Below, piece after piece: positions 151 to 23,260 of a stretch of DNA of 31,717 nt (within the stretch, counting starts at the first letter, position 1; each line of letters starts with the position of its first letter). Source of the stretch: Macrostomum lignano (taxonomy: Eukaryota). The stretch lies in the NCBI GenBank assembly GCA_002269645.1, contig NIVC01002454.1, positions 1 through 31,717 of the forward strand, in the 5' to 3' direction. The position numbers and the translations under genes are program-made. Below the pieces are notes generated by a model. That model ran no database searches, was not told the origin of the DNA, and saw nothing but the letters and a program-made list of their open reading frames with translations.

Positions 151-1194
151 CTCTCTATGCATGCTGCCAGCTAACCGTGTGGACTTGTGACGCAAATTGG
201 ATCACCACAGTTGAGACGCGAACCGCGGGCGTAACGTGAATTGCGTCACCTGGGGCTGAAGGTCTAAGAAAAGTTGACCAATGGTTTCGGAGGAAACTTG
301 TACATGTTGCCGAGTCAACATTACACTAGCTTACAAACTTAAGCTTTCACAGAATGCTAATAGACACCTCAAAACAGTCGAAAGTGCTAGGCAAGAAGTT
401 TTCATTTTTTGGAATATAGTGCGTCTTTTAATGCAATGGTATAAAACGTGATTATTATCTTTTTTATGCAATTTCTTTTTTTCTCTTGCTATACACCAGT
501 CGCATTTGGTGTTGAACCATCATCGACTTCGGACAGAATCAGTAGTGGCTGGAAGAGAGAAAGAGAGGTGGAGTCTTCAAGCTTCAAACATGGGGTTCCG
601 CTATCGCAACAGCTGGATTGACAGCACGGCAGGTTTCCTGTATGGGAGAGTTCCCTATTGGTTCAGTGCCAGACTAGCCACTGCCAGTGAATCCACAGGG
701 GCACAAAGAGTAGAAAACCGGTCGTAGCCGAGCTGTCTCTCTCACAGCTCCGTTGCGTCAAGGAATTTGCCAAAAAAAGCCGAACAGCGGGAGAACCCGA
801 CGGAATTATTTTCAATCTGCTCCAAGTAAGTTAAAGACGGCGGCTCACTTTGTGCGCCATGTTATCTGTCAGAATCTTCGTCTAGTTTTACCCAGCCCAG
901 GATTGCCACGCAGTGATGGAATTCAATCTCTACTCGAGTTTGAGCAGTCAATGCGTAATCAAATTCTGGGCCAGTAATTGGGTCGATAATGCAAATCACT
1001 CTCCCCTCTGGCTGTCCACCTCGTCTCCAGTGGGACTGATCAGCTGTTGAAAGCCGATCGTAGGAGTTTGTGGGGGGCGACTCAGAAACTCAAGCTCGCA
1101 CCATCCTATTGAATTTCTTTTTGCATCTGTCGCAACTTTTTCCCATGTCCGGCATGGTTTCAGAGAGAATCACTTGCTTTACCGCGATAACAGC

Positions 1195-3627
1195 ATGGAG
1201 AAGAAGTTGGCGCTGATCATGTTCGCGGCCTGCCTGCTGTTGGGCCTCGCGTTTGCCGCACCTGCTGCTAACAGCGACGAATTCGAGGAGCTTCAGTAAG
1301 TCAGTGTGATTCTTGCGCGTTCCCAAATTGATTCGTTTTTTAGATTCAGAAATATTGTATTTTTCAAGACGTCAGTTGACCGGCAGCCAAGGAAGACCTC
1401 TGACCACGCGCATGGATACGCACGCAGGCACACTCTCGCTCTTCCTATTACACACGGTCTGTGCCTTCTGGGTTGGCCCTCAAGGCTCGTGAATCGCGCG
1501 GAAAGTCCCAGACCAATGTTTTCGTGCTCAAATCCAGGATCTGTATAGCGCGGTAGTCGCGATGCAGAGTAGAATTGAGTACAAAGCTCCCGAATTGAAA
1601 GAGAAACTGTGTATTAGGACAATTTTCATTGTATGACATGCTTGTTCGCATGCGTTTCCACCGTTTTCAACTGCTTTGGGGGTTCAGTCAGGTGTCAATA
1701 CGAGATAAACTCACTGGCGTATGCCAAGGGAAAAAGTTATTAGTTCGAGAGAACCATCATCGTCGATCGGCTCGCAATCAAAGCTGGTCTGCTGTTTGAA
1801 TAGGTGGATTGTCTTACCTGCACTGCAAATACGAGGACGAGCTTAAGTGTCAGCCAGTCGCCCTGCAGAGCAACCACTTCAGAATTCATTTCCGATCTCT
1901 TTAGAGATTCTGGAGAATTCCAACAGTTTTTTTGCCAGTCCTGTTCGGCGTCCCCACCCCCATGCAGTATTTTCCGTTCAGCTCGGATTGCTTTTTTCAA
2001 TTTTCTTCTTTTTTTAATTTGAGCCTTGCGCTTGCCAGAGAGGGAAGCAAGAGGAAGCCCAACTGTTCAGCACGTTGAGCGACTTGAGGCGCTTGAGAAG
2101 AGACGAGAATCGAAGACAGGATCTCATTAGCTGGACGGCGGCTGAGCCTCTGTAATCCTCCGGGTCACAGGAACCCGAAGGTCCTTCGACATCGATGCAC
2201 CGCCTTATCGGAAGCCACGTTAGCAAATTTCATGCCGCATGCTCGCCAATTTTTAAGGCTTCTCCAGGATCAGTTCAGATGAGATAAGGAAAACAAATTT
2301 TCTTGGTGATACAAATTTTGATAGCGATCGACCAGCCATGCTCCATGGCTTAGACCACAGGTGGTGGGACATAAACCACCTAGCCTATTATACCATCTGG
2401 ATGTCTATCATGGAGTGCCAGTAGACTTACTGAAGGATCTGTTAGTTCAATAGAGTGATCCACTGTACTGCGGTCTCTCTGCAGAGCCGTGAAGCGCCTG
2501 AGCTCCGATCATCGCATTGCCGACCTTCTGGCCTCCCTGGGCGGTGCGGGCACCGGCGGTGGCCAGTACGGCATCGACCTCAATGCCAGGTGAGGCTTTG
2601 CAGGACTGCTGCTCTCTAATATACTCGTAATGTCCTATGCAGGCAAGTTGCTAGCCGAGTAGCTGCTAGTTAAGCAGAGTTGACCACGGTTAGTACGCAG
2701 CTGACTGCGTCAATCCCTCCACTGAGGCAGCCATTTAATCAGGCTGTTCTTCCAGTTCACTCTGCTGCTCTGATAGGGCAGCAGCTCCAAGTTGCGGTAG
2801 AAATGCAGGGTAGAAGCAAGGACGGGAGACTTTGGTTCTGAGAAAAGTCATAAGATCCTGGTTTTACCCGAAAAATACAATACGGAGATGGAGCTTTTAA
2901 ATTTTTCAACACAAAAATAATAACAGCTGACGAGATTGATTGAAGATCGTGGATGTTGTCTAAAAAAGTATTTAAAAGAAGTTCCCCATCCTACTTAAGT
3001 AGTCCTTAGGTTGGAGCACAGATACTAAAATAACTAGATGAGCCACTCAGGCATATATACATAGTAAAACTGCTTTCTACTATCAGTTCAGTAGCAAAGA
3101 AGAAAATATAAGCTATTTTATAAAAATAAAAGCAGCTGAAATGACTTTTGATAAGTTTAGAAGCCCAAGCTTGCAGGCGTAAACAACTTGCTAATTGGTT
3201 CAGCCATAATGTACATTAGCCAGTCCACTGAAATGTACATAGCAGCTTTAGACTGGAATTCCAAGAAAGGCGATAAAAATTGCGGCGGGGCGGGGGGTAG
3301 TGTGGTAAGGCACGGTTGGAGGGTTTAAGCTGGGAGGGGGGTAAGAACCGATAAAGGAGCCTTGGCTTAAAAATACATTAAAATGCTTCTGTTTAATTTA
3401 CTACTGAACTGAAAGTAGCTTACACGCAAATGTGCTGAGTGGCCCATCTGGTTATTCTAGTAGCTGTCCATAGTACTGTAGAACGGGTACAAGTGTGGTT
3501 TTAAAATGTTTTTTTAGACAAACAATGCAAATTTTCAGTACGAATCGTAGGGCACGCCTCATCATTTCATTTTTCATGTCGTCAATTCAGCGGCAGACGG
3601 AAGCGAAGCAGCGGCGGCCTGCCTTGA
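1195..3627 (+). CDS. Neuropeptide precursor, 80 aa, join(1195..1295,2485..2589,3591..3627): [80 protein letters not shown]
   Basis: Hydrophobic signal peptide and acidic spacer; donors GTAAGT (1296) and GTGAGG (2590); acceptors CTCTCTGCAG (2484) and TCAATTCAG (3590). Both phase-2 introns join in frame. The joined product has a KR site, a 31-aa peptide and a G-RRKR amidation/cleavage signal. Confidence 0.85.
3017..3468 (+). mobile_element. MITE family A, copy 1 (about 450 bp, non-autonomous DNA transposon) in intron 2 of the neuropeptide gene
   Basis: Imperfect TIRs (CACAGATACTAAAATAACTAGATGAGCCACTCAG ... CTGAGTGGCCCATCTGGTTATTCTAGTAGCTGT). Full-length reverse-complement similarity to 4190-5206 once the nested insert is removed. 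No clear TSD. Confidence 0.8.
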
Positions 3628-3819
3628 GACTGCGGCGTCCTGAGAAGCGGCGCCTTGTGAACTGTCACTTTTGCCCCTCTTCCCTCACCGAACCGAGCGA
3701 TGCCCACCCGCCTCCTCAAAACCCCTCTGTCTCGCGTGTGAAGGGTCCGTGCGATGAACTGAGACGCCTGCCGGAAGCTGAATCGAACATCCGCGTGACG
3801 ACAGCTTTGATTTCCGTTT

Positions 3820-3825
3820 AATAAA
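3820..3825 (+). terminator. Probable polyadenylation signal of the neuropeptide gene
   Basis: AATAAA about 190 nt after the stop codon at 3627. Confidence 0.5.
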
Positions 3826-4189
3826 ACTGGACGGCTGCAAATTTATCAATCTGGCAGTAAAACAAATTTGTTGGCCCAGTTTTTTCGTTATAATTCGAAT
3901 TTGCATTGGTTGCGTGATGACCAATTGAATGGGCGGAACCGAGCACACTGAGCATAAGCTCGATAAATTCACTTCAAGCAGTTTGAAACTTGGTACTGCA
4001 GGCAAAGCTATACGAGTTCAGGTTCATGTCCTTTCTATACAGTCTAGCAAAAGCTTAACGAAAGATTATGGGACATCGGCAACGGGCAAGAATGCAGTTG
4101 TGTCCACGCTCTAGATGTACTTCGCAAAGGTCTGCTGCTCGAATTTTGTGAAATGGACTTTTACGAGACGAGCGTACCTTAGACAAACC

Positions 4190-5206
4190 CACAGCTACTA
4201 GAATAAGATGGGCCACTCAGCACATTTGCGTGTAAGCTACTTTCAGTTCAGTAGTAAGTTAAACAGAAGCATTCTAATGTATTTTTCAAGCCAAGGCTCA
4301 TTTATCGGCTCTTACCCCCCTCCAGCTTGAACCCTCAACCGCGCCTTTCCACACGGGGGCGCTTCATAAGACCTAAATTTCACAACGCCTAAAGCACGTG
4401 ACTTCACATCACCTAAATTTCATAACGCCTAAATTTCACAACGCCTAAAATCGAAAATGCAGCCTCCTTCACAACGCCTAAATTTCACAACGCCTAAAAT
4501 TTCTGCACGCTCCTTCATATCGCCTAAATTTCATATCGCCTAAATTTCATAACGCCTAAAACCGAAAATGCATCCTACTTCACATCACCTAAATTTCATA
4601 TCGCCTAAATTTCACAACGCCTAAAAATCTGCATGCTCTTTCATATCGCCTAAACTTCATATCGCCTAAATTTCATAACACCTAAAACTGAATGTGAAGG
4701 AGAGAAGCAAAGATTTTAGACGTTGTGAAATTTAGGCGATATGAAATTTAGGTGATGTGAAGGATGCTGCATTTTCGGTTTTAGGCGTTGTGAAATTTAG
4801 GCGATGTGAAAGAGCGTGCAAATATTTTAGGCGTTGTGAAATTTAGGCGATATGAAATTTAGGTGTTGTGAAGTGTGGTGGTTTTAGGCGTTGTGAAATT
4901 TAGGTCTTATGAAAGCGTCCCTTCCACACTACCCCCCACCCGCCTCAATTTTTAATTGCCTTTCTCGAAATTCCAGCCTAAGCTGCCATGTACATTTCAG
5001 TGAACTGGCTAATTTACATTACTGCTGAACCAATTAGCAAGTTGTTTACGCCTGCAAGCTTGGGCTTCTAAACTTATCAAAGTCATTTCAGCTGCCTTTT
5101 TATAAAATAGCTTATGTATTCTTTTTTGGTACTGAACTGAAAGTAGAAAGCAGTTTTACTAAGTATATGTGTCTGAGTGGCCCATCTTGTCATTTTAGTA
5201 TCTATG
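4190..5206 (-). mobile_element. MITE family A, copy 2 (inverted relative to copy 1), P-element/hAT-like ends, carrying a nested insertion
   Basis: Termini CACAGCTACTA ... TAGTATCTATG; exact 8-bp TSD GACAAACC at 4182-4189 and 5207-5214. CA(N)AG ends with an 8-bp TSD fit the P superfamily or hAT. Confidence 0.85.
4355..4921. mobile_element. MITE family B (567 bp, foldback-like), nested in family A copy 2
   Basis: TIRs GGGGGCGCTTCATAAGACCTAAATTTCACAACGCCTAAA / TTTAGGCGTTGTGAAATTTAGGTCTTATGAAAGCGTCCC; exact 8-bp TSD TTCCACAC at 4347-4354 and 4922-4929; internal roughly 16-bp subrepeats (AATTTCACAACGCCTA) direct on the left and inverted on the right; empty site visible in copy 1 at 3300-3307. Confidence 0.9.
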
Positions 5207-5727: not shown

Positions 5728-6306
5728 ATGAAAACTGACGAACGCCGCTTCTGGTTCTGCTTCGCGGCGCTGCAGCTGTCACTCTGCCTGGCTGCCGCGC
5801 CTCTGGCCTGGCTGTCCGTCAGCCTGGCCAATGACGTGCCAGCTGTTATCGTTACGGCCGTCGGTGCCGCTCTGTGCTTGGCCTCCGTAGCTTTACTGTG
5901 CTCGGCGCAGTTTGCTGAAGGCGCCGCCTGCCTGACCCGCCTGCTGTGGCTGCGGGTGTTCACCGCCGGCTCGGGCGCTTGTGCACAGCTCGCCGCGGTC
6001 GGCCTGCTGCTGTTTGGCGCAGCAAATCGGCGTCTGCTGCCGACTGAAGCCGACGCGATCTGCGTGGCCATCCTGACCGGCTTAGCGGCGGTGAATTCGG
6101 CGCTGGCCGCGTCGGCCTGCGTGCACATCTACAACTGCGTGACCGCGGTGCGGCTCAGCTGGCGGGTGGCGGCGGCCCTCGAGGACGAGGCTGACGTCTT
6201 TGGACAGGCCGTCGACAGCAGGAGCAGGAGCGTCGCTCCGGTTGACTTGGAGGAGTCGGAAAAAGTTGTTGACGAATCTGGCGGGCAGCTGGAGCTGGAC
6301 AGTTGA
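5728..6306 (+). CDS. Single-exon 192-aa predicted four-transmembrane protein with an acidic cytoplasmic C-tail; family not recognised
   Basis: ATG-initiated ORF coinciding with a GC-rich island; four hydrophobic stretches (FWFCFAALQLSLCLAAAPLAWLSV; VIVTAVGAALCLASVALLC; VFTAGSGACAQLAAVGLLLFGAA; AICVAILTGLAAVNSALAASACVHIY). Confidence 0.75.
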   Translation: MKTDERRFWFCFAALQLSLCLAAAPLAWLSVSLANDVPAVIVTAVGAALCLASVALLCSAQFAEGAACLTRLLWLRVFTAGSGACAQLAAVGLLLFGAANRRLLPTEADAICVAILTGLAAVNSALAASACVHIYNCVTAVRLSWRVAAALEDEADVFGQAVDSRSRSVAPVDLEESEKVVDESGGQLELDS

Positions 6307-6820: not shown

Positions 6821-7376
<556 letters not shown>

Positions 7377-8240
7377 ATCAGAGCCTCTTCAAGGTACTCA
7401 AGCATGAAATACTTTAATGTGTGTTGACTTACTGGATGATTTTGTGGAGCCTGGGACTTGAAGAATCAGGAAGACTTTTTTAAGACTTAAGAGTTCGTAT
7501 GTTTGTTGAAAGATGCAGGATAAAAAATTCAACTCGCGCCCTTAAATTTCGCGAGCCTGCTGCTACACTCGTAGATTCTTGATTGATGGACCCACGAGTG
7601 TTGTATGAAGAACCTTGCAAATAAGAATCGCTGCTTTACAATAAAAAAGCGTTGCAGTTCGGCTTCAAAAATGTTTATTTCCATATGTCTTTTATCGGTG
7701 CCGGTGCAAATATCAAATAATATGAGTGAAAAAACATCAATATTGCGTATGAATCACTTACTGCAAGTAGTGCGGATAGATACTCAGCCGAAGTGCATCT
7801 GACCATCTCACTGGGTTAACTAAAACTAATAGTGCGTCTCGTGCGCAAATTTTCTTTTAAAAACAAAAAATAATATTGGGAGGTTGCCTTGTTTTAATTG
7901 TTTGTTTAGTTTAGCTTTAAAAAAAGACAAGAATATTTGCAATCGCAGTTGTTAAGTAGACTCAGACGGTCATTTGTAGTCAAGCAGTCAATGTGGGATT
8001 TTTGACAATGTTTCCTGCAGATTTCCTCTCCTTCGGTGATGGAGAAGCCTGTCTATAGGGTCAAAGTCCCCAGGCATAAAATAACATTGGAAAATAGAGT
8101 TTTGTCTTCCCAACTTGTTTTCTACTTTCAGCTCCTTCAAACCTCAACCGGGCTGGATCACAGTGTCAATACATCACGTGACGAATAATAGAAAATAGGT
8201 TTGTGTTCTTGACGAGAACAACACAAAATTGAAGTGAAGT

Positions 8241-10148
8241 GATAGAGCTCCGCTACCATCCTACTAAGCATTCGATAGAGCTCCGCTACCATCCTACTAA
8301 GCATTCGATAGAGCTCCGCTACCATCCTACTAAGCATTCGATAGAGCTCCGCTACCCTCCTACTAAGCATTCGATAGAGCTCCGCTACCATCCTACTAAG
8401 CATTCGATAGAGCTCCGCTACCATCCTACTAAGCATTCGATAGAGCTCCGCTACCATCCTACTAAGCATTCGATAGAGCTCCGCTACCATCCTACTAAGC
8501 ATTCGATAGAGCTCAGCTACAATCCTAGAAAACATTCGATAGAGCTCCGCTACAATCCTAGAAAACATTCGATAGAGCTCCGCTACAATCCTACAAAACA
8601 TTCGATAGAGCTCCGCTACAATCCTAGAAAACATTCGATAGAGCTCCGCTACAATCCTACAAAACATTCGATAGAGCTCCGCTACAATCCTAGAAAACAT
8701 TCGATAGAGCTCCGCTACAATCCTACAAAACATTCGATAGAGCTCCGCTACAATCCTAGAAAACATTCGATAGAGCTCCGCTACAATCCTACAAAACATT
8801 CGATAGAGCTCCGCTACAATCCTAGAAAACATTCGATAGAGCTCCGCTACAATCCTACAAAACATTCGATAGAGCTCAGCTACAATCCTACAAAACATTC
8901 GATAGAGCTCCGCTACAATCCTAGAAAACATTCGATAGAGCTCCGCTACAATCCTACAAAACATTCGATAGAGCTCCGCTACCCTCCTACAAAACATTCG
9001 ATAGAGCTCCGATACCCTCCTACAAAACATTCGATAGAGCTCCGATACCCTCCCACAAAACATTCGATAGAGCTCCGCTACCCTCCCACAAAACATTCGA
9101 TAGAGCTCCGCTACCCTCCCACAAAACATTCGATAGAGCTCCGATACCCTCCTACAAAACATTCGATAGAGCTCCGCTACCCTCTCACAAAACATTCGAT
9201 AGAGCTCCGATATCCTCCCACAAAACATTCGATAGAGCTCCGATACCCTCCTACAAAACATTCGATAGAGCTCCGATACCCTCCTACAAAACAATCGATA
9301 GAGCTCCACTACCCTTCCACAAAACATTCGATAGAGCTCCGCTACCCTCCCACAAAACATTCGATAGAGCTCCGATACCCTCCCACAAAACATTCGATAG
9401 AGCTCCGCTACCCTCCTACAAAACATTCGATAGAGCTCCGCTACCCTCCCACAAAACATTCGATAGAGCTCCGCTACCCTCCCACAAAACATTCGATAGA
9501 GCTCCGATACCCTTCCACAAAACATTCGATAGAGCTCCGCTACCCTCCCACAAAACATTCGATAGAGCTCCGATACCCTCCCACAAAACATTCGATAGAG
9601 CTCCGCTACCATCCTACAAAACAATCGATAGAGCTCCGCTACCCTCTCACAAAACATTCGATAGAGCTCCGCTACCCTCTCACAAAACATTCGATAGAGC
9701 TCCGCTACCCTCTCACAAAACATTCGATAGAGCTCCGCTACCCTCTCACAAAACATTCGATAGAGCTCCGATACCCTCCTACAAAACATTCGATAGAGCT
9801 CCGCTACCCTCCAACAAAACATTCGATAGAGCTCCGATACCCTCCTACAAAACAATCGATAGAGCTCCGATACCCTCCTACAAAACATTCGATAGAGCTC
9901 CGATACCCTCCTACAAAACATTCGATAGAGCTCCGATACCCTCCCACAAAACATTCGATAGAGCTCCGATACCCTCCTACAAAACAATCGATAGAGCTCC
10001 GATACCCTCCTACAAAACATTCGATAGAGCTCCGATACCCTCCTACAAAACATTCGATAGAGCTCCGATACCCTCCTACAAAACATTCGATAGAGCTCCG
10101 ATACCCTCCTACAAAACATTCGATAGAGCTCCGATACCCTCCTACAAA
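8241..10148. repeat. 33-bp minisatellite, about 58 units (GATAGAGCTCCGCTACCMTCCTACAAAACATTC), just downstream of the GPCR stop
   Basis: 11-aa periodicity of the ORFs (HSIELRYPPTK); unit variants change progressively along the array. Confidence 0.98.
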
Positions 10149-10194: not shown

Positions 10195-12992
10195 TTATCG
10201 AGCTGTGGCAGCGGCGACGCTCCTAGATTCCCAGTCTTCGCTGCCGGCAGAGCAGCTCTTGCCGCCACCGCCTCCTCCGCATTCTCCTCTTCCACAGGTC
10301 CGGTAGACGGCAACAACGAAAGCCTGTCGGAACCGCGGCATGAAGGCGAAGTAGATAATTGGGTTCACCAGCGAGTTCAGGCTCACCAGGAACAGGGTGA
10401 TGTTCTAGAAGAATGACAGGAAATTGTTGGCAATGAGGCCGAAAGCGATCAGCAAGAAGTTGGTCTGGTTGGCGGCGAAGCAGAGCACGTAGGCGACCCG
10501 GCTATGGTGAAGGTCTTGATCAGAACGCGTGAAGCCGCCAGCTTCTTGCAGGCCGCCTGCTGCTGCTGGGTGGTAAACTTGAACCGCTTGCGCAGCTCTA
10601 CGATCATCCAAGCGTAGCAGACGGTCATGTTTACCAACGGGAAGGCGAACTTCACGGCGTAGTTCAACAGGCCATAGGCGAAGGCCAGCTCCGGGGGCAC
10701 CAGGCCGGACAGGATGCAGCATCCGGCCGTCGGTCCGTCCGGGCTGCCGCGCCGAAAGTCGGCCAGGCCGCGCCACTGATGCGCCAGGCCGAGCAGCCAG
10801 GCCAGGCCGCAGGCCAGTCGAATCTTCCACAGCTGACGGCGCACCATTGGCCGCACGATGGCGAAGAAGCGCTCGAGAGTGATGATCTGCAGGTTGAACT
10901 GCGGGCAGAGCAAGGTGATCGTTGGAAATCGAGTCTTCCACTGAAAGATTTATAAAACACGTCAGAATTTGATTGAAGTTTCAATGTAAAAAGACTCGAG
11001 TCCCTGTCTCTTGGTGGGCTCCCCCTGTCTCTTGGTGGGCTCCCCCTGTCTCTTGGTGGGTGGCCCCTGTCTCTTGGTGGGCTCCCCCTGTCTCTTGGTG
11101 GGTGGCCCCTGTCTCTTGGTGGGTGCCCCCTGTCTCTTGGTGGGCTCCCCCTGTCTCTTGGTGGGTGGCCCCTGTCTATTGGTGGGTGGCCCCTGTCTCT
11201 TGGTGGGTGCCCCCTGTCTCTTGGTAGGTGGCCCCTGTCTCTTGGTGGGTGCCCCCTGTCTATTGGTGGGTGGCCCCTGTCTCTTGGTGGGTGCCCCCTG
11301 TCTCTTGGTGGGTGGCCCCTGTCTATTGGTGGGTGGCCCCTGTCTCTTGGTGGGCTCCCCCTGTCTCTTGGTGGGTGGCCCCTGTCTATTGGTGGGTGCC
11401 CCCTGTCTCTTGGTGGGTGCCCCCTGTCTCTTGGTGGGTGCCCCCTGTCTCTTGGTGGGCTCCCCCTGTCTCTTGGTGGGTTCCCCCTGTCTCTTGGTGG
11501 GTGCCCCCTGTCTCTTGGTGGGCTCCCCCTGTCTCTTGGTGGGTGCCCCCTGTCTCTTGGTGGGTGGCCCCTGTCTCTTGGTGGGCTCCCCCTGTCTCTT
11601 GGTGGGCTCCCCCTGTCTCTTGGTGGGTGGCCCCTGTCTCTTGGTGGGTGGCCCCTGTCTCTTGGTGGGCTCCCCCTGTCTCTTGGTGGGTGGCCCCTGT
11701 CTATTGGTGGGCTCCCCCTGTCTCTTGGTAGGTGGCCCCTGTCTCTTGGTGGGCTCCCCCTGTCTCTTGGTGGGCTCCCCCTGTCTCTTGGTGGGCTCCC
11801 CCTGTCTCTTGGTGGGTGGCCCCTGTCTATTGGTGGGTGGCCCCTGTCTCTTGGTGGGTGCCCCCTGTCTCTTGGTTGGCCCTGGTGGTGGGTGGCCCCT
11901 GTCTCTTGGTGGGTGCCCCCTGTCTCTTGGTGGGTGCCCCCTGTCTCTTGGTGGGTGCCCCCTGTCTCTTGGTAGGTGGCCCCTGTCTATTGGTGGGTGG
12001 CCCCTGTCTCTTGGTGGGTGCCCCCTGTCTCTTGGTGGGTGCCCCCTGTCTCTTGGTGGGTGCCCCCTGTCTTTTGGTAGGTGCCCCCTGTCTCTTGGTG
12101 GGTGCCCCTGTCTATTGGTGGGCTCCCCCTGTCTCTTATCGTATCATTTCCTAGGAGCGTATTTTCTCTGTTTTCGCGCGTGGTGGCCCCTAATTGGGCC
12201 GTTTTATATTGTGCGTGTTGTGCGTACGATCTACGTGTATTTAGAGCGATTCGCAAAATAGTTGCGCGATCAATAATTTAGGTCTCTCACGCGTAGGGAA
12301 AGGTCCAGTTTCGTTAATTTTCAATTTAGCCTGATCCTCATCGCGGTTTACTCTCTCCTCTAACTTTTATACGACCGTTCAAACATCCCTTTCCGCCATT
12401 TGCTAAGGTAGCTTCATGTGTTAGTTTTTCATATTTGTCCTACTAAGCAATCGGTCAGGGACAGGGCAATTGTCATTAGATTCACACAGATGAAGCACAG
12501 CCACCACCCCCAGGCAAATTCTGTGTACACAACTAAAAACGAATGAGTCAGGCCGTCCCTGTACACCCTGAGTGACCGGACTTCAGGCAGTCTCTCTGTT
12601 CCGTACGCAGCAACAGCATATGAGTGAAGTCTCACCGTGCTGGCATTGACCAGAATCCAGACGGCGCTCTGGCTGAACCACAAGTGACAGACGATGCTAC
12701 CCAACACGTTCTCAGGCACCCTGCTGGGCAGGTGCACGGTGGACCACTTGACGGTGGTCACGGCGCAGGTGGCCAAGTCGATGACCGACTGGTTGATGAC
12801 CAGCAGGCGCGGGTTGCGGCTCATGTGCATGTGGCGCCTGCACAGCAGCCAGATCACCACGGCGTTCAGAGCGATGCCAGCGATGGCGAAGCCCAGGTAG
12901 ATGTAGGGCGCCGCGTCGCTTAGCCAAGTGCTGTTGGCGTGGGTCTCCGAGTACTCTTTGATGCAGACCTCAGCCTCCGAATCGTTGCTCAT
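10195..12992 (-). pseudogene. Class A (rhodopsin-like) peptide-receptor-type GPCR, about 353 aa, exons 12992..12636 and 10898..10195; disrupted by a 1-nt deletion near 10500 and a TAG at 10405-10407
   Basis: N-terminal NST sequon; TM1 GIALNAVVI; TM2 LVINQSVIDL; TM3 CHLW...NAST|FNLQIITLERFFAIVRP across a phase-0 intron (donor GTGAGA, acceptor CCCGCAG); TM5 FPLVNMTVCY; TM6 VAYVLCFAANQ in a shifted frame; TM7 F*NITLFLVSLNSLVNPIIY and helix 8 FRQA. Pseudogene versus assembly error is not resolved. Confidence 0.85.
11002..12137. repeat. 21-bp minisatellite, about 54 units (CCCTGTCTCTTGGTGGGYKSC), inside the GPCR intron
   Basis: 7-aa periodicity (LLVGSPC); directly visible. Confidence 0.98.
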
Positions 12993-13048
12993 GCTTCTCG
13001 GCTTCTGAAGGCAAAGCGAAAAACTCTTAATTAAATTAAGATTCTTAA

Positions 13049-14019
13049 GTCCGAAACCCGTGTCCGAAACCCGTGTCCGAAACTCGTATCCGAAACCCGT
13101 GTCCGAAACCCGTGTCCGAAACTCGTATCCGAAACCCGTGTCCGAAACCCGTGTCCGAAACTCGTATCCGAAACCCGTGTCCGAAACCCGTGTCTGAAAC
13201 CCTGCCTGAAACCTGTGTCCGAAACCCGTGCCTGAAACCCATGCCTGAAACCCGTGTCCGAAACCCGTGTCCGAAATCCATGTCCGAAACGCATTCCCGC
13301 AATCCACTCCCGAAACATGTGTCCGAAATCCATGTCCGAAACGCATTCCCGAAATCCACTCCCGAAACCCGTGTCCGAAATCCGTGTCCGAAATCCGTGT
13401 CTTAAACCCGTGCCTGAAACCCGTGCCTGAAACCCGTGCCTGAAACCCGTGTCCGAAATACGTGTCTTAAACCCGTGCCTGAAACCCGTGTCCGAAATAC
13501 GTGTCTTAAACCCGTGCCTGAAACCCGTGTCCGAAATACGTGTCTTAAACCCGTGCCTGAAACCCGTGTCCGAAATACGTGTCTTAAACCCGTGCCTGAA
13601 ACCCGTGTCCGAAATACGTGTCTTAAACCCGTGCCTGAAACCCGTGTCCGAAATACGTGTCTTAAACCCGTGCCTGAAACCCGTGCCTGAAACCCGTGTC
13701 CGAAATCCGTGTCTTAAACCCGTGCCTGAAACCCGTGCCTGAAACCCGTGTCCGAAACCCGTGCCTGAAACCCGTGTCTGAAACCCGTGTCTGAAACCCG
13801 TGTCTGAAACCCGTGCCTGAAACCCGTGCCTGAAACCCGTGCCTGAAACCCGTGCCTGAAACCCGTGCCTGAAACCCGTGCCTGAAACCCGTGCCTGAAA
13901 CCCGTGCCTGAAACCCGTGTCCGAAACCCGTGCCTGAAACCCGTGCCTGAAACCCGTGTCCGAAACCCGTGCCTGAAACCCGTGTCCGAAACCCGTGTCC
14001 GAAACCCGTGTCCGAAACC
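13049..14019. repeat. 13-bp minisatellite (TCCGAAACCCGTG and variants) with a 39-bp higher-order block at about 13440-13700
   Basis: 13-aa periodicity in translation; trimer CCGAAATACGTGT-CTTAAACCCGTGC-CTGAAACCCGTGT repeated several times. Confidence 0.97.
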
Positions 14020-14420
14020 GTCGATAATGGAATATTAAAAAGTCCTAAAACAAGAAATGTTAGCATTTTTCTGGACTTTGTATACAGAGTGTGAAATTAA
14101 AAGCAATTGACTTACCGTCAGTTATTCGTAAAATATTTTATCAAATTAATTTCTTGATAACAGTGTTCCCAAATCCCACGCTGGACTCAGAGCTTCAGAG
14201 CTTTATACTTGCAGAGTCACCCTTCATTCGCTGATATCCTTGCCTGCCAATCATTGGCTGGTTAACTCAGTTCATTGACGAGTCCTGAGTCTCCCTTTGG
14301 ATATTGGCTGAGTCAGCTAAATAGATCCGAAACGCCTAACAAGACTGGACAGGTACTGAATCCTAAAACTGTATTTATTAGCACTGAAAATTCTTTCATA
14401 ATTGAAGACTGTTGAGTTAA

Positions 14421-15426
14421 CAGTAGCTGAAGTGAGTTTACAGTAGCTAAAGTGAGTTTACAGTAGCTAAAGTGAGTTTACAGTAGCTGAAGTGAGTTTA
14501 CAGTAGCTGAACTGAGTTTACAGCAGCTGAACTGAGTTTACAGCAGCTGAAGTGAGTTTACAGTAGCTGAAGTGAGTTTACGGTAGCTGAAGTGAGTTTA
14601 CGGTAGCTGAAGTGAGTTTACAGCAGCTGAACTGAGTTTACGGTAGCTGAAGTGAGTTTACAGTAGCTAAAGTGAGTTTACAGCAGCTAAAGTGAGTTTA
14701 CAGTAGCTAAAGTGAGTTTACGGTAGCTGAAGTGAGTTTACAGTAGCTGAACTGAGTTTACAGCAGCTAAAGTGAGTTTACAGTAGCTAAAGTGAGTTTG
14801 CAGTAGCTGAAGTGAGTTTACGGTAGCTGAAGTGAGTTTACAGTAGCTAAAGTGAGTTTACAGTAGCTGAAGTGAGTTTACAGTAGCTAAAGTGAGTTTA
14901 CGGTAGCTGAAGTGAGTTTACAGTAGCTGAACTGAGTTTACAGCAGCTAAAGTGAGTTTACAGTAGCTAAAGTGAGTTTGCAGTAGCTGAAGTGAGTTTA
15001 CAGTAGCTAAAGTGAGTTTACGGTAGCTGAAGTGAGTTTACAGTAGCTGAACTGAGTTTACAGCAGCTAAAGTGAGTTTACAGTAGCTGAAGTGAGTTTA
15101 CAGTAGCTGAAGTGAGTTTACAGCAGCTGAACTGAGTTTACAGCAGCTGAAGTGAGTTTACAGTAGCTGAAGTGAGTTTACGGTAGCTGAAGTGAGTTTA
15201 CAGCAGCTGAACTGAGTTTACGGTAGCTAAAGTGAGTTTACAGTAGCTAAAGTGAGTTTACAGTAGCTGAAGTGAGTTTACAGTAGCTGAAGTGAGTTTA
15301 CGGTAGCTGAAGTGAGTTTACAGTAGCTGAAGTGAGTTTACAGTAGCTGAAGTGAGTTTACAGTAGCTGAAGTGAGTTTACAGTAGCTGAAGTGAGTTTA
15401 CGGTAGCTGAAGTGAGTTTACGGTAG
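14421..15426. repeat. 20-bp minisatellite, about 50 units (CAGTAGCTGAAGTGAGTTTA)
   Basis: Directly visible. Confidence 0.98.
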
Positions 15427-16380: not shown

Positions 16381-16820
16381 GCTATGGGCGAGTTGCTATG
16401 GGCGAGTTGCTATGGGCGAGTTGCTATGGGCGAGTTGCTATGGGCGAGTTGCTATGGGCGAGTTGCTATGGGCGAGTTGCTATGGGCGAGTTGCTATGGG
16501 CGAGTTGCTATGGGCGAGTTGCTATGGGCGAGTTGCTATGGGCGAGTTGCTATGGGCGAGTTGCTATGGGCGAGTTGCTATGGGCGAGTTGCTATGGGCG
16601 AGTTGCTATGGGCGAGTTGCTATGGGCGAGTTGCTATGGGCGAGTTGCTATGGGCGAGTTGCTATGGGCGAGTTGCTATGGGCGAGTTGCTATGGGCGAG
16701 TTGCTATGGGCGAGTTGCTATGGGCGAGTTGCTATGGGCGAGTTGCTATGGGCGAGTTGCTATGGGCGAGTTGCTATGGGCGAGTTGCTATGGGCGAGTT
16801 GCTATGGGCGAGTTGCTATG
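16381..16820. repeat. 14-bp minisatellite, about 31 apparently identical units (GCTATGGGCGAGTT), overlapping the stop codon of the clarin-like gene
   Basis: Directly visible; TAG at 16802-16804 (minus strand) lies within the array. Confidence 0.98.
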
Positions 16821-19384
16821 CAGCGCATCGGATAGCAGTGAGCGCTCTCCACCACCTGGGCAGCATCCGTATCGGCAGTCGATCGAGCGTCCAGCTGCCG
16901 CTCCACCAGCAGCCAGGCTCGAGGAATCTCGCACAGCAAGCCGGCCAGATGGCCGAAAACGGCAGCAACGAGCAGCCAGAAAGCCGTTCCGCGCTCCGCC
17001 CAGATCGACTCGCCCTCGGCCGGGCCCGATGGCGCCATCAGACCTTCGACTGCTGCCGCTAGGCGGCGGGGCTCCGCTGACAGTTGCTTGGCGCCGACTT
17101 CGCCGCAAGCCAGACAGGCGATCTGCGCCGTCAGTGCGCCGGCCAGCAGGCCGACATCGGCGGCAATTGCGACAGTCATTGCGGAGTCCGGAAAGGCCGC
17201 AACGGCGGCGTGGAAGGCCAGGCTGCCAACTGAGGCGGCGAGACCGCCCGACAGGAACACAGCAGCTGAGCGCCAGTTCGAGTTGCCTGAATGTTTTCAA
17301 CAGTTAGCCGAGTGTGAACTGGTTGCTAGGGCTTGAGTTGCCTGAATGTTTTCAACAGTTAGCCGAGTGTGAACTGGTTGCTAGGGCTTGAGTTGCCTGA
17401 ATGTTTTCAACAGTTAGCCGAGTGTGAACTGGTTGCTAGGGCTTGAGTTGCCTGAATGTTTTCAACAGTTAGCCGAGTGTGAACTGGTTGCTAGGGCTTG
17501 AGTTGCCTGAATGTTTTCAACAGTTAGCCGAGTGTGAACTGGTTGCTAGGGCTTGAGTTGCCTGAATGTTTTCAACAGTTAGCCGAGACCCTCGCTAATG
17601 TGGCTCGAACTCAGGGACTTGGGGGTTGGGAAGACTTCGTTCGCTGCCCGGTGAAGCTTGCCAATATTCATGCGGACATCTCCGGTTTCTCTATCATTAT
17701 GGGCGATGAAATATTTCATTTTTTTCAATTCCTGAAATCGTCTTGAAGACACGCAAATTTTTTAAATAGATTTCCGAATAATGCGCCAAAGATCTTGAAA
17801 ACCTTATCCTTAAGTATAATCTTTTTGATTAATCCACTTCCTAAACCGTCTGATAATCCCACATTTTTTCTAATCCAAAATTTCCTGTCAGAATCGAAAA
17901 ATCACGATATGATTTTAGTACGGTATGAGAGGCCCGATGCGTTCTGTAGTGATGGCACAGCAACTCGGCTTTTAAAAGTTAAAAAATAATTTAAAATGAA
18001 AGGCAAAACGAAACAGGAGCGAACCAATGCAACACACACAAGTCACACGGATCAAGCACAATGCAACACACACAAGTCACAAGGATCAGGCACAATGCAA
18101 CACACACAAGACACAAGGATCAGGCACAATGCAACACACACAAGACACAAGGATCAGGCACAATGCAACACACACAAGACACAAGGATCAGGCACAATGC
18201 AACACAAACAAGACACAAGGATCAGGCACAATGCAACACAAACAAGACACAAGGATCAGGCACAATGCAACACACAGAAGACACAAGGATCAGGCACAAT
18301 GCAACACACACAAGACACAAGGATCAGGCACAATGCAACACAAACAAGACACAAGGATCAGGCACAATGCAACACACACAAGACACAAGGATCAGGCACA
18401 ATGCAACACAAACAAGACACAAGGATCAGGCACAATGCAACACAAACAAGACACAAGGATCAGGCACAATGCAACACGTACAAGACACAAGGATCAGGCA
18501 CAATGCAACACAAACAAGACACAAGGATCAGGCACAATGCAACACACACAAGACACAAGGATCAGGCACAATGCAACACACACAAGTCACAAGGATCAGG
18601 CACAATGCAACACACACAAGACACAAGGATCAGGCACAATGCAACACACACAAGACACAAGGATCAGGCACAATGCAACACACACAAGACACAAGGGTCA
18701 GGCAAAATGCAACACACACAAGTCACAAGGATCAGGCACAATGCAACACACACAAGACACAAGGATCAGGCACAATGCAACACGTACAAGACACAAGGAT
18801 CAGGCACAATGCAATACACGTAAAACACAAGGATCAGGCACAATGCAACACGTACAAGACACAAGGATCAGGCACAATGCAACACACACAAGACACAAGG
18901 ATCAGGCACAATGCAACACACACAAGTCACAAGGATCAGGCACAATGCAACACACACAATTCACAAGGATCAGGCACAATGCAACACACAGAAGACACAA
19001 GGATCAGGCAAAATGCAACACACACAAGACACAAGGATCAGGCACAATGCAACACACACAAGACACAAGGATCAGGCACAATGCAACACACACAAGACAC
19101 AAGGATCAGGCACAATGCAACACATTACCACTGCACTCACTAAGCACAATGTCACTGCCTGGCATCCAGAGCTCCGCGCCATCGGAAAGTGTCAACCTGA
19201 CCCGAGACCGGAGAAGGCCAATATGCCAGCTGGCCGACCGGACATTGGAGTCCCGTTGGGTCCAGCTGATCCGCAGGCTACAGAATGTGTCCGTGGCTGC
19301 TGCACCAATTAGCGAACAGACGCCAACAAAGCTAGCAATGGCTCCAGCCAGGTACAGCCTCCATGTGATGATGACTAAGGACAT
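16802..19384 (-). CDS. Clarin/claudin (PMP22 superfamily)-like four-TM protein, about 242 aa, exons 19384..19141 and 17286..16802
   Basis: Exon 1 MSLVIITWRLYLAGAIASFVGVCSLIGAAATDTF...SWHIGLLRSRVRL...SDIVL ends at donor GTGAGT (phase 1). Exon 2 after ACATTCAG continues in frame as SNSNWRSAAVFLSGGLAASVGSLAF... with three more hydrophobic segments, the last GTAFWLLVAAVFGHLAGLLC. Topology TM1-large loop-TM2-TM3-loop-TM4. Family call is by motif resemblance only; an upstream exon is possible (acceptor TTTTGCAG about 20 nt before the ATG). Confidence 0.7.
17280..17587. repeat. 55-bp tandem repeat, 5.6 identical units, each containing the branch point and 3' splice site of clarin-like exon 2
   Basis: Units start at 17280, 17335, 17390, 17445, 17500 and 17555; the minus-strand unit reads ...CTCGGCTAACTGTTGAAAACATTCAG|GCAACTC. 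Confidence 0.95.
18025..19124. repeat. 34-bp minisatellite, about 32 units (CACAATGCAACACACACAAGACACAAGGATCAGG), intronic, ending about 16 nt from the exon 1 donor
   Basis: 34-aa periodicity seen in all three + frames. Confidence 0.98.
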
Positions 19385-19907: not shown

Positions 19908-21689
19908 CTTAGTCAATGATAGGCTTAGTCAGTAGTTTACTCAATCGGTAGGTTAGTCAATCGGTAGGTTAGTCAATCGGTAGCTTAGTCAATCGGTAGC
20001 TTAGTCAATCTGTAGCTTAGTCAATCGGTAGCTTAGTCAATCGGTAGCTTAGTCAATCGGTAGCTTAGTCAATCGGTAGCTTAGTCAATCGGTAGCTTAG
20101 TCAATCGGTAGCTTAGTCAATCGGTAGCTTAGTCAATCGGTAGCTTAGTCAATCGGTAGCTTAGTCAATCGGTAGCTTAGTCAATCTGTAGCTTAGTCAA
20201 TCGGTAGCTTAGTCAATCGGTAGCTTAGTCAATCGGTAGCTTAGTCAATCGGTAGCTTAGTCAATCGGTAGCTTAGTCAATCGGTAGCTTAGTCAATCGG
20301 TAGCTTAGTCAATCGGTCGCTTAGTCAATCGGTAGCTTAGTCAATCGGTAGCTTAGTCAATCGGTAGCTTAGTCAATCGGTAGCTTAGTCAATCGGTAGC
20401 TTAGTCAATCGGTAGCTTAGTCAATCGGTAGCTTAGTCAATCGGTAGCTTAGTCAATCGGTAGCTTAGTCAATCGGTAGTTTACTCAATCGGTAGCTTAG
20501 TCAATCGGTAGCTTAGTCAATCGGTAGTTTACTCAATCGGTAGCTTAGTCAATCGGTAGCTTAGTCAATCGGTAGCTTAGTCAATCGGTAGCTTAGTCAA
20601 TCGGTAGCTTAGTCAATCGGTAGCTTAGTCAATCGGTAGCTTAGTCAATCGGTAGCTTAGTCAATCGGTAGCTTAGTCAATCGGTAGCTTAGTCAATCGG
20701 TAGCTTAGTCAATCGGTAGCTTAGTCAATCGGTAGCTTAGTCAATCGGTAGCTTAGTCAATCGGTAGCTTAGTCAATCGGTAGCTTAGTCAATCGGTAGC
20801 TTAGTCAATCGGTAGCTTAGTCAATCGGTAGCTTAGTCAATCGGTAGCTTAGTCAATCGGTAGCTTAGTCAATCGGTAGGTTAGTCAATCGGTAGCTTAG
20901 TCAATCTGTAGCTTAGTCAATCGGTACCTTAGTCAATCGGTAGCTTAGTCAATCGGTAGCTTAGTCAATCGGTAGCTTAGTCAATCTGTAGCTTAGTCAA
21001 TCGGTAGCTTAGTCAATCGGTAGCTTAGTCAATCGGTAGCTTAGTCAATCGGTAGCTTAGTCAATCGGTACCTTAGTCAATCGGTAGCTTAGTCAATCGG
21101 TACCTTAGTCAATCGGTAGCTTAGTCAATCGGTAGCTGAGTCAATCGGTAGCTTAGTCAATCGGTAGCTTAGTCAATCGGTAGTTTACTCAATCGGTAGC
21201 TTAGTCAATCGGTAGCTTAGTCAATCGGTAGCTTAGTCAATCGGTAGCTTAGTCAATCGGTAGCTTAGTCAATCGGTAGCTTAGTCAATCGGTAGCTTAG
21301 TCAATCGGTAGCTTAGTCAATCGGTAGCTTAGTCAATCGGTAGCTTAGTCAATCGGTAGCTTAGTCAATCGGTAGCTTAGTCAATCGGTAGCTTAGTCAA
21401 TCGGTAGCTTAGTCAATCGGTAGCTTAGTCAATCGGTAGCTTAGTCAATCGGTAGCTTAGTCAATCGGTAGCTTAGTCAATCGGTAGCTTAGTCAATCGG
21501 TAGCTTAGTCAATCGGTAGCTTAGTCAATCGGTAGCTTAGTCAATCGGTAGCTTAGTCAATCGGTAGCTTAGTCAATCGGTACCTTAGTCAATCGGTAGC
21601 TTAGTCAATCGGTAGTTTACTCAATCGGTAGCTTAGTCAATCGGTAGCTTAGTCAATAGGTAGCTTAGTCAATCGGTAGCTTAGTCAAT
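19908..21689. repeat. 16-bp minisatellite, about 110 units (AGTCAATCGGTAGCTT)
   Basis: Directly visible; highly homogeneous. Confidence 0.98.
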
Positions 21690-22680: not shown

Positions 22681-23260
22681 GGGGTTGTAGCCTAGTGGGT
22701 TGTAGCCTAGTGGGTTGTAGCCTAGTGGGTTGTAGCCTAGTGGGTTGTAGCCTAGGGGGTTGTAGCCTAGTGGGTTGTAGCCTAGTGGGTTGTAGCCTAG
22801 TGGGTTGTAGCCTAGTGGGTTGTAGCCTAGTGGGTTGTAGCCTAGTGGGTTGTAGCCTAGGGGGTTGTAGCCTAGTGGGTTGTAGCCTAGTGGGTTGTAG
22901 CCTAGTGGGTTGTAGCCTAGTGGGTTGTAGCCTAGTGGGTTGTAGCCTAGTGGGTTGTAGCCTAGTGGGTTGTAGCCTAGTGGGTTGTAGCCTAGTGGGT
23001 TGTAGCCTAGGGGTTGTAGCCTAGTGGGTTGTAGCCTAGTGGGTTGTAGCCTAGTGGGTTGTAGCCTAGTGGGTTGTAGCCTAGTGGGTTGTAGCCTAGT
23101 GGGTTGTAGCCTAGTGGGTTGTAGCCTAGTGGGTTGTAGCCTAGTGGGTTGTAGCCTAGTGGGTTGTAGCCTAGTGGGTTGGAGCCTAGTGGGTTGTAGC
23201 CTAGTGGGTTGTAGCCTAGTGGGTTGTAGCCTAGTGGGTTGGAGCCTAGTGGGTTGGAGC
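22681..23260 (+). repeat. 15-bp minisatellite, about 38 units (GGGTTGTAGCCTAGT), an amplified 5' head/A-box of the adjacent SINE
   Basis: The unit equals the first 15 nt of the SINE as seen single-copy at 16239-16254 (minus strand); the array runs directly into the SINE body. Confidence 0.95.

Follow-up and report, generated by a model that had tools for sequence, protein, structure and literature searches.

A candidate iPTH/PXXXamide-type neuropeptide gene from Macrostomum lignano, a flatworm

A spliced neuropeptide precursor gene and its paralogues

The stretch of DNA analyzed here is contig NIVC01002454.1 of the flatworm Macrostomum lignano (31,717 nucleotides [nt]; "the window" denotes this whole stretch), and near its start it carries a plus-strand gene for a precursor with the architecture of an amidated neuropeptide. 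The coordinates of its parts are collected in Table 1. Splicing of 101, 105, and 37 coding nt yields a 243-nt coding sequence and an 80-amino-acid precursor, with all junctions of the GT-AG type. An earlier reading made from the letters of the window (the sequence-only reading) had proposed these three coding exons, and their coordinates were reproduced exactly when we spliced the window sequence; as it had also stated, the unspliced first coding exon terminates at a TAA (1297-1299) after 34 codons.

The reading frame opens with the ATG at 1195 and reaches the donor GCTTCA/gtaagt (a slash marks the exon-intron boundary), where the exon ends with 2 nt of codon Q34 at position 1295. The symmetric second coding exon encodes (Q)AVKR and then the peptide up to a split serine, so that the codons of the mature peptide occupy 2498-2589 plus base 3591. 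The last segment completes S69 with its third base and then encodes G70 as amidation donor (3592-3594), the basic site RRKR (3595-3606), and the tail SSGGLP before the TGA.

The 80-residue product has identical counterparts in two public databases, namely PAA58761.1 of GenBank (BOX15_Mlig026345g3, "hypothetical protein") and A0A1I8ITV6 of UniProt ("Secreted protein"). The description of the gene as hidden therefore holds for the mechanical, prokaryote-style list of open reading frames (ORFs), from which it is absent, but not for the public annotation, where it is present. The sister GenBank models PAA49573, PAA57704, PAA60075, and PAA60077 are 116 amino acids long, marked partial, and open in frame through the 5' untranslated region (UTR). 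Because these 5'-extended models continue in frame upstream of the ATG and read through the 5' exon, the noncoding 5' exon could be located, and SVASRNLPKKAEQRENPTELFSICSK was mapped by tblastn to 749-826. The annotation of the NIVC01 contigs comes from a genome-guided RNA sequencing (RNA-seq) transcriptome assembled with StringTie/TACO, with ORFs called by TransDecoder (PMC5730564), and since the GenBank models derive from this transcriptome, they lend the junctions indirect RNA support. An exact-protein look-up in Logan returned no independent spliced transcript contig, the protein being carried by GenBank genomic contigs only.

The region of the peptide gene has at least four further copies about 99% identical to the window, on NIVC01002335, NIVC01002194 (twice, in opposite orientation), and NIVC01003839. 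No copy matches the window without gaps over 5 kb, and the differences are mostly small indels. Such copies agree with the redundancy documented for the Mlig_3_7 assembly (PMC5730564). We conclude with high confidence that the window gene is one genomic copy of M. lignano Mlig026345, comprising four exons, three of them coding, and specifying an 80-amino-acid preproneuropeptide.

At its upstream edge, an AG at 746-747 (cacag/CTCC) directly precedes the annotated transcript start. This AG could be a spliced-leader trans-splice acceptor, or it could link to an exon located further upstream; spliced-leader trans-splicing is common in M. lignano (PMC5730564).

Table 1. Positions of the peptide gene parts and of the satellite arrays in the window (a slash marks an exon-intron boundary)
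Feature	Position	Strand	Remarks
5' UTR exon, noncoding	~748-825	+	Donor CCAA/GTAAGT (GTAAGT at 826); 5' end approximate
ATG exon	1164-1295	+	31 nt of 5' UTR and first 101 coding nt; acceptor tttcag/AGAGAAT (AG 1162-1163); donor TTCA/gtaagt
ATG exon, coding content	1195-1295	+	Signal peptide and acidic spacer
Intron 1	1296-2484	+	Phase 2, GT...AG
Peptide exon	2485-2589	+	105 nt; phase 2 at either end (symmetric); tctctctgcag/AGCCGT ... TGCCAG/gtgagg
Intron 2	2590-3590	+	Phase 2; splits codon of last peptide residue, just 5' of amidation Gly
Last coding segment	3591-3627	+	caattcag/CGGCAG ... CCTTGA; 37 nt; TGA 3625-3627
3' UTR, probable	3628-3845	+	AATAAA 3820-3825, 193 nt past stop; extent inferred
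Satellite array	6830-7376		
Satellite array	8241-10148		
Satellite array	11002-12137		
Satellite array	13049-14019		
Satellite array	14413-15426		
Satellite array	16381-16820		
Satellite array	18025-19124		
Satellite array	19932-21689		
Satellite array	22682-23260		
Satellite array	30762-31067		

Within the precursor, a signal peptide and an acidic spacer are followed by K37-R38, the peptide, G70-RRKR74, and a 6-residue tail, and this amidated-neuropeptide layout, which the sequence-only reading had described, can be read straight from the spliced sequence. Heuristic inspection of the n-, h-, and c-regions, on which the signal peptide call is based, revealed an n-region with charged residues (MEKK), a hydrophobic core 17 residues long (residues 5-21), and A-x-A sites after residues 21 and 24. 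Six-frame scans of the window detected a single peptide. The N-terminal third of the peptide displays the i, i+3, i+4, i+7 hydrophobic spacing of an amphipathic helix, and a Gly-rich linker and a YGIDLNAS tail complete it.

On the accepted processing rules for KR and G-basic sites, we infer the following route of maturation. The signal peptide of about 21 to 24 residues would direct the precursor into the secretory pathway, where prohormone convertases would be expected to cleave after K37-R38 and within or after R71-R-K-R74. A carboxypeptidase would then trim the basic residues, and peptidylglycine alpha-amidating monooxygenase would convert G70 into the C-terminal amide. The predicted product is a 31-residue Ser-amide with a calculated monoisotopic mass of 2984.495 Da ([M+3H]3+ 995.839); for the predicted amidated peptides of the paralogues Mlig012485 and A0A1I8GKX0, described next, the calculation gives 3314.685 and 4446.183 Da, respectively.

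A phmmer search against 1.84 billion representative sequences found two true relatives, BOX15_Mlig012485g1 and A0A1I8GKX0, both from M. lignano, which brings the total to three genes. The upstream dibasic and downstream Gly-basic sites are present in all three precursors, and their common pattern is LSSDHR[IL]AD[LM]L ... GQYGI[DN]L.A[SN]-G-basic. We reconstructed the Mlig012485 gene on NIVC01002879 (exons 6001-6134, 7964-8071, and 10106-10142); it has the same two phase-2 introns, which at the DNA level bear no resemblance to the window. For this pair of genes, the region from KR through the peptide to G-basic has proportions of nonsynonymous (pN) and synonymous (pS) differences of 0.20 and 0.59, respectively, versus a pN of 0.59 and a pS of 0.71 for the signal peptide plus spacer. 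Clear purifying selection within the precursor is thus confined to the predicted peptide, which is the usual pattern of neuropeptide precursors.

Family assignment of the peptide

The iPTH/PXXXamide peptides are the protostome ligands of receptors orthologous to the vertebrate PTH receptors. The sequence-only reading had suggested a resemblance to this family, and we examined the link using profiles built from the family sequences (iPTH/PXXXamide and QS-type) in Table S1 of Xie et al. 2020 (PMC7224569), with no flatworm included. A hidden Markov model (HMM) of 33 non-flatworm PXXXamide-type peptides gave the window precursor 20.8 bits (E 1.7e-8 at Z=1, that is, for one sequence), aligning end to end from KR through GRRKR. 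When the 31 peptide residues were shuffled and the flanks kept, none of 20,000 shuffles reached this score; the profile without the basic flanks gave 11.9 bits, a value reached by 1 of 20,000 shuffles. Among the 1286 six-frame segments of the window, the segment of the second coding exon was the sole significant HMM match (E 0.0022; next best, 2.2).

The reciprocal test led in the same direction. We built an HMM from the three flatworm peptides, stripped of their flanks, and searched with it a set of 45 family peptides and about 2,060 decoy segments. Ranks 3 to 12 all went to members of the family, namely Phoronis, Locusta, Crassostrea, Limulus, Sepia, Cimex, Notospermus, Agrilus, Octopus, and Capitella, and no decoy ranked above them. 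The best of these was Phoronis transcript 1 (E 1.1e-4). The alignment consensus reads KR-x-S-S-D-[QH]-R-[ILVM]-A-[ED]-L ... [YH]-G-x-[IV]-D-[PL]-x3-G-basic, and the flatworm SSDHRIADL, like SSDQRIAEL and SDHRVAEL of other members, fits the N-terminal motif S-D-x-R-[ILVM]-A-[ED]-[LIM]. Xie et al. described the SD of this motif as "highly conserved" and the amidation/cleavage signal as "strictly conserved" in the family (PMC7224569).

Intron positions served as an independent character. A profile search with the mixed family returned about 50 arthropod, mollusc, and annelid proteins, all "uncharacterized" or unnamed, and added no flatworm. Many of these matches are prokaryote-style ORFs on genomic contigs that end in DPxxM, L, or A directly followed by a stop, and about 40 genomic ORF matches, from arthropods, molluscs, and annelids, end in donor read-through at the same codon. 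Judging from the ORF ends, these endings appear to fit read-through of AT/GTAA, CT/GTAA, and GC/GTAA donors that interrupt the last peptide codon past its second base. We inspected the oyster exon directly (Logan SRR327424), the ORF of which agrees with the Crassostrea gigas transcript-3 peptide as far as the residue created by read-through. This exon, cag/A TTT ATG AGG AAA CGC ... CCA GCT CTG AT/gtaggt, is flanked by a phase-2 intron three codons 5' of KR and by another of phase 2 within the codon that immediately precedes the amidation Gly. In the window gene (CA/A GCC GTG AAG CGC ... GCC AG/C GGC), the upstream intron is shifted by one codon; in oyster and in the paralogue Mlig012485 it has the same phase and lies within one codon of the same place relative to the dibasic site. 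The downstream intron is identical in position and phase in the window gene, oyster, and the paralogue (AG/G ... AA/T, with the donor GCC AA/gtgcga). The flatworm gene thus has the gene structure of the family, namely a peptide exon of its own with flanking phase-2 introns, the 3' one lying in the codon of the last residue.

Convergence does not readily account for intron positions and phases that are held in common, and this bears on the idea that the gene encodes a secreted peptide specific to the Macrostomum lineage, such as an antimicrobial or gland product, with a convergent resemblance to iPTH/PXXXamide. The close relatives found within M. lignano only and the failure to match any Pfam family would suit such a peptide. 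A convergent origin would, however, leave unexplained the two intron positions and phases held in common with the oyster gene; moreover, the profile match spans both conserved ends of the peptide with a score above all shuffles, the reciprocal profile test is positive, and the KR ... G-RRKR sites together with peptide-selective conservation are typical of neuropeptide precursors. We therefore regard a lineage-specific origin as very improbable.

Several observations nevertheless weigh against membership in the iPTH/PXXXamide family. The C-terminus, YG-I-D-L-N-A-S-amide, departs from the literal signature [YFH]-G-x-x-[DN]-P-x-x-x-amide, with Leu in place of Pro, and Leu occupies this name-giving Pro position in all three flatworm paralogues. 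The spacing from YG to D is one residue shorter than in other phyla, and the C-terminal extension, which is long in other phyla, comprises 6 residues here. Owing to the shortness of the peptides, the bit scores stay modest. The single-sequence phmmer search of the 1.84 billion representatives retrieved the M. lignano paralogues and low-complexity noise and no sequence from other phyla, and a homologue from other flatworms appeared in none of the phmmer, flatworm-profile, and mixed-family-profile searches; the profile of the three flatworm sequences, run against 5.8 billion proteins, returned those three alone. A Pfam scan of the three precursors matched no family at E <= 1, vertebrate PTH included, and Pfam has no model for the iPTH/PXXXamide family. 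A PDB sequence search yielded matches (ARPC1A, E 0.12) that we dismissed as chance.

The missing Pro does not disqualify the peptide, because Xie et al. called this residue only "mildly conserved" in the family (PMC7224569) and because Leu or Phe stands in its place in Centruroides gene 2, Mesobuthus gene 2, Clitarchus, Apis, and Orchesella, the first four having Leu. Since scorpion and insect members share the substitution, the new family that the sequence-only reading had offered as an alternative is not needed, and the suggested family link itself was upheld by the forward HMM, the shuffles, the reciprocal HMM, and the intron positions and phases. We consider it highly probable that the protostome iPTH/PXXXamide/QSGamide family has a flatworm orthologue in this peptide.

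The ligands of other class-B receptor families, PDF/cerebrin and calcitonin/DH31, were weighed as well. PDF peptides share a stretch of the I-x-x-L-L-x-L kind with the flatworm peptide and likewise end in a small, amidated residue, and the size of DH31 matches that of the 31-residue amidated peptide, which speaks for these families. Against them, the precursors gave no Pfam match to Pigment_DH or any other peptide hormone family at E <= 1, and the gene structure, as well as the specific motifs SSDxR.A[DE]L and YG.D, fits iPTH/PXXXamide. The chance that the peptide belongs to one of these other families seems to us very small.

A different question is which of the family's exon types gave rise to the flatworm peptide, as it could have come from a Cys-containing QSamide/QSGamide-type exon by loss of two cysteines instead of from a PXXXamide-type exon. 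The flatworm C-terminus ...GIDLNAS-G resembles ...CGLVDIAAS-G and ...CGVVDVEAS-G, which also specify a Ser-amide; the QS-type HMM gave 15.1 bits, a score reached by none of 20,000 shuffles; and the best reciprocal match, Phoronis transcript 1, is itself QS-type (RLADMLASI...GLNLDEV). On the other hand, none of the three paralogues has a cysteine, the start SSD[QH]R[IL]A[DE]L is the PXXXamide signature and not the Q-x-[AG]-D with which QS-type peptides begin, and the Y/H-G before D is of PXXXamide type. The PXXXamide HMM also scored higher than the QS-type HMM, both for the window peptide (20.8 versus 15.1 bits) and for a paralogue (21.4 versus 7.4). The N-terminal motif, the YG, and the HMM scores thus appear to favor descent from a PXXX-type exon, and we consider the QS-type origin unlikely.

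Comparison with known systems and likely function

Compared with the arthropod iPTHs of Tribolium castaneum and Ixodes ricinus, the flatworm precursor likewise contains one peptide after a signal peptide and a short spacer (PMC7224569; bioRxiv 10.64898/2026.06.22.733765). Both have KR or RR upstream and a Gly with two to four basic residues downstream, leading to amidation, and both share the N-terminal S-D-x-R-[ILV]-A-[ED]-L, the His of SDHR being found also in Locusta, Bemisia, and Cimex. The ending [YF]-G-x-x-D-x-x-x-x-amide and the phase-2 intron in the last peptide codon are further likenesses. The flatworm peptide differs in its shorter, Gly-rich middle (31 residues in total versus about 35 to 45), in having Leu and not Pro at position -4 (as in a few arthropod members), and in the one residue fewer between YG and D. 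Furthermore, the flatworm peptides end in Ser-amide or Asn-amide and the arthropod iPTHs in Ile-, Leu-, or Val-amide, and the 6 residues after the basic site compare with 20 to 80 in arthropods. Receptor pairing has been demonstrated for the beetle and tick iPTHs and is a prediction for the flatworm peptide.

The lophotrochozoan PXXXamide/QSamide (QSGamide) gene, for which we compared Sepia officinalis, Crassostrea gigas, Platynereis, and Capitella, has a SSDQRIAELQALIAL-type N-terminus that resembles the start of the flatworm peptide (PMC8398477, PMC8557429). In both, a shared signal peptide exon is followed by a symmetric phase-2/phase-2 peptide exon and by a shared final exon that opens with the last base of the final residue and continues with the G-basic codons. 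The Ser-amide ending of the flatworm peptide is common to the QS-type peptides. In molluscs, annelids, brachiopods, and phoronids, each gene has at least two alternative peptide exons, one of them Cys-containing (PMC8398477), a trait that most arthropods do not share, while M. lignano has three separate single-peptide genes instead; HMM scans of the 31.7-kb window and the 16-kb paralogue locus NIVC01002879 found no second peptide exon of either QS or PXXX type.

Vertebrate PTH is not known to be amidated, and the flatworm precursors have no detectable sequence similarity to PTH, PTHrP, or TIP39, as the absence of a Pfam match indicates. Tribolium iPTH is reported to be less than 12% identical to vertebrate PTH (Xie et al., PMC7224569). 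The likeness lies in the presumed receptor class, as orthology links the receptors of iPTH with the vertebrate PTH receptor group (PMC7224569, PMC8557429).

By analogy with the iPTHs of Tribolium and Ixodes, which act in this way, the flatworm peptide is most likely a ligand of a PTH-receptor-like class-B1 (secretin-type) G protein-coupled receptor (GPCR), and neuronal or endocrine expression may be inferred. The Tribolium receptors iPTHR1 and iPTHR2 respond to synthetic iPTH with half-maximal effective concentrations (EC50) of 63 and 413 nM, respectively (PMC7224569), and in Ixodes ricinus, where identified neurons produce iPTH, the peptide activates PTHR1 and PTHR2 (bioRxiv 10.64898/2026.06.22.733765). 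In Lophotrochozoa, the pairing of iPTH-type ligand and receptor is assumed but unproven (Thiel et al., PMC8557429). Schistosoma mansoni Smp_170560, known since 2011, is a secretin-type GPCR with homology to PTH receptors to which no ligand is assigned (PMC3261222).

A broader proposal is that all three flatworm "LXXXamide" peptides are ligands of a flatworm PTH-receptor-like GPCR, that PTH-type signaling was present in the platyhelminth ancestor, and that the ligand has diversified in Macrostomum and has diverged or been lost in planarians and parasites; we give this proposal an even chance. If it is true, the ancestral function of PTH-type signaling would become testable in an animal without skeleton or cuticle, and M. 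lignano permits RNA interference and transgenesis.

The system is not new in kind, as its architecture, processing logic, and probable receptor class are standard. The gene is publicly annotated, but only as a hypothetical or secreted protein. Published surveys of the family cover nemerteans, brachiopods, phoronids, molluscs, annelids, tardigrades, and arthropods and no Platyhelminthes (PMC7224569 Table S1), and Xie et al., who made use of the mirrored occurrence of ligand and PTHR-type receptor across taxa, listed no flatworm ligand or receptor (PMC7224569). The literature on PXXXamide and QSamide deals with cuttlefish, oyster, other molluscs, insects, nemerteans, brachiopods, and phoronids, and in the open literature on PXXXamide or QSamide/QSGamide we found no paper with flatworms as its subject. 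No paper in the searchable open literature contains the peptide strings, an earlier description under an "npp" number in flatworm neuropeptide catalogues being possible, and neither the main text of Collins et al. 2010 nor that of the schistosome peptidome paper has a matching motif.

Naming the M. lignano genes therefore fills a taxonomic gap in the family. It also yields a peptide that may be the ligand of a flatworm class-B receptor, itself of possible interest for anthelmintics, as well as a search pattern for planarian and parasite orthologues, LSSDHR[IL]AD.L ... GQYGI[DN]L..[SN]-amide on a phase-2/phase-2 exon.

Other features of the window

Fragments of a rhodopsin-family GPCR lie on the opposite strand 7 to 10 kb downstream of the peptide gene, at 10449-10913 (-) and about 12429-13000 (-). 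The fragment at 10449-10913 matches PF00001 with 37.5 bits and has an ERF (DRY-like) motif, and the upstream ORF resembles transmembrane segments 1 to 3; the 21-nt minisatellite that separates the two fragments (11002-12137) is presumably intronic. As a receptor linked to the peptide gene, this candidate was rejected, since it belongs to class A (PF00001) and not to class B.

About one-third of the window consists of micro- and minisatellite arrays (Table 1) with periods of 4 to 34 nt, up to 137 copies, and 84 to 100% matches. Nearly all long ORFs of the window and its extreme strand skews are due to these arrays. A 192-amino-acid hydrophobic ORF at 5728-6306 (+) matches no Pfam family; GenBank also calls it as a gene at the equivalent place roughly 2 kb downstream of two further copies of the peptide gene, one on NIVC01002335 and one on NIVC01002194. 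Finally, a dispersed repeat of about 300 bp occurs in inverted orientation at 3017-3317, within intron 2, and at about 4913-5203, with 88% identity to copies on NIVC01002335, and is probably a small nonautonomous transposable element.

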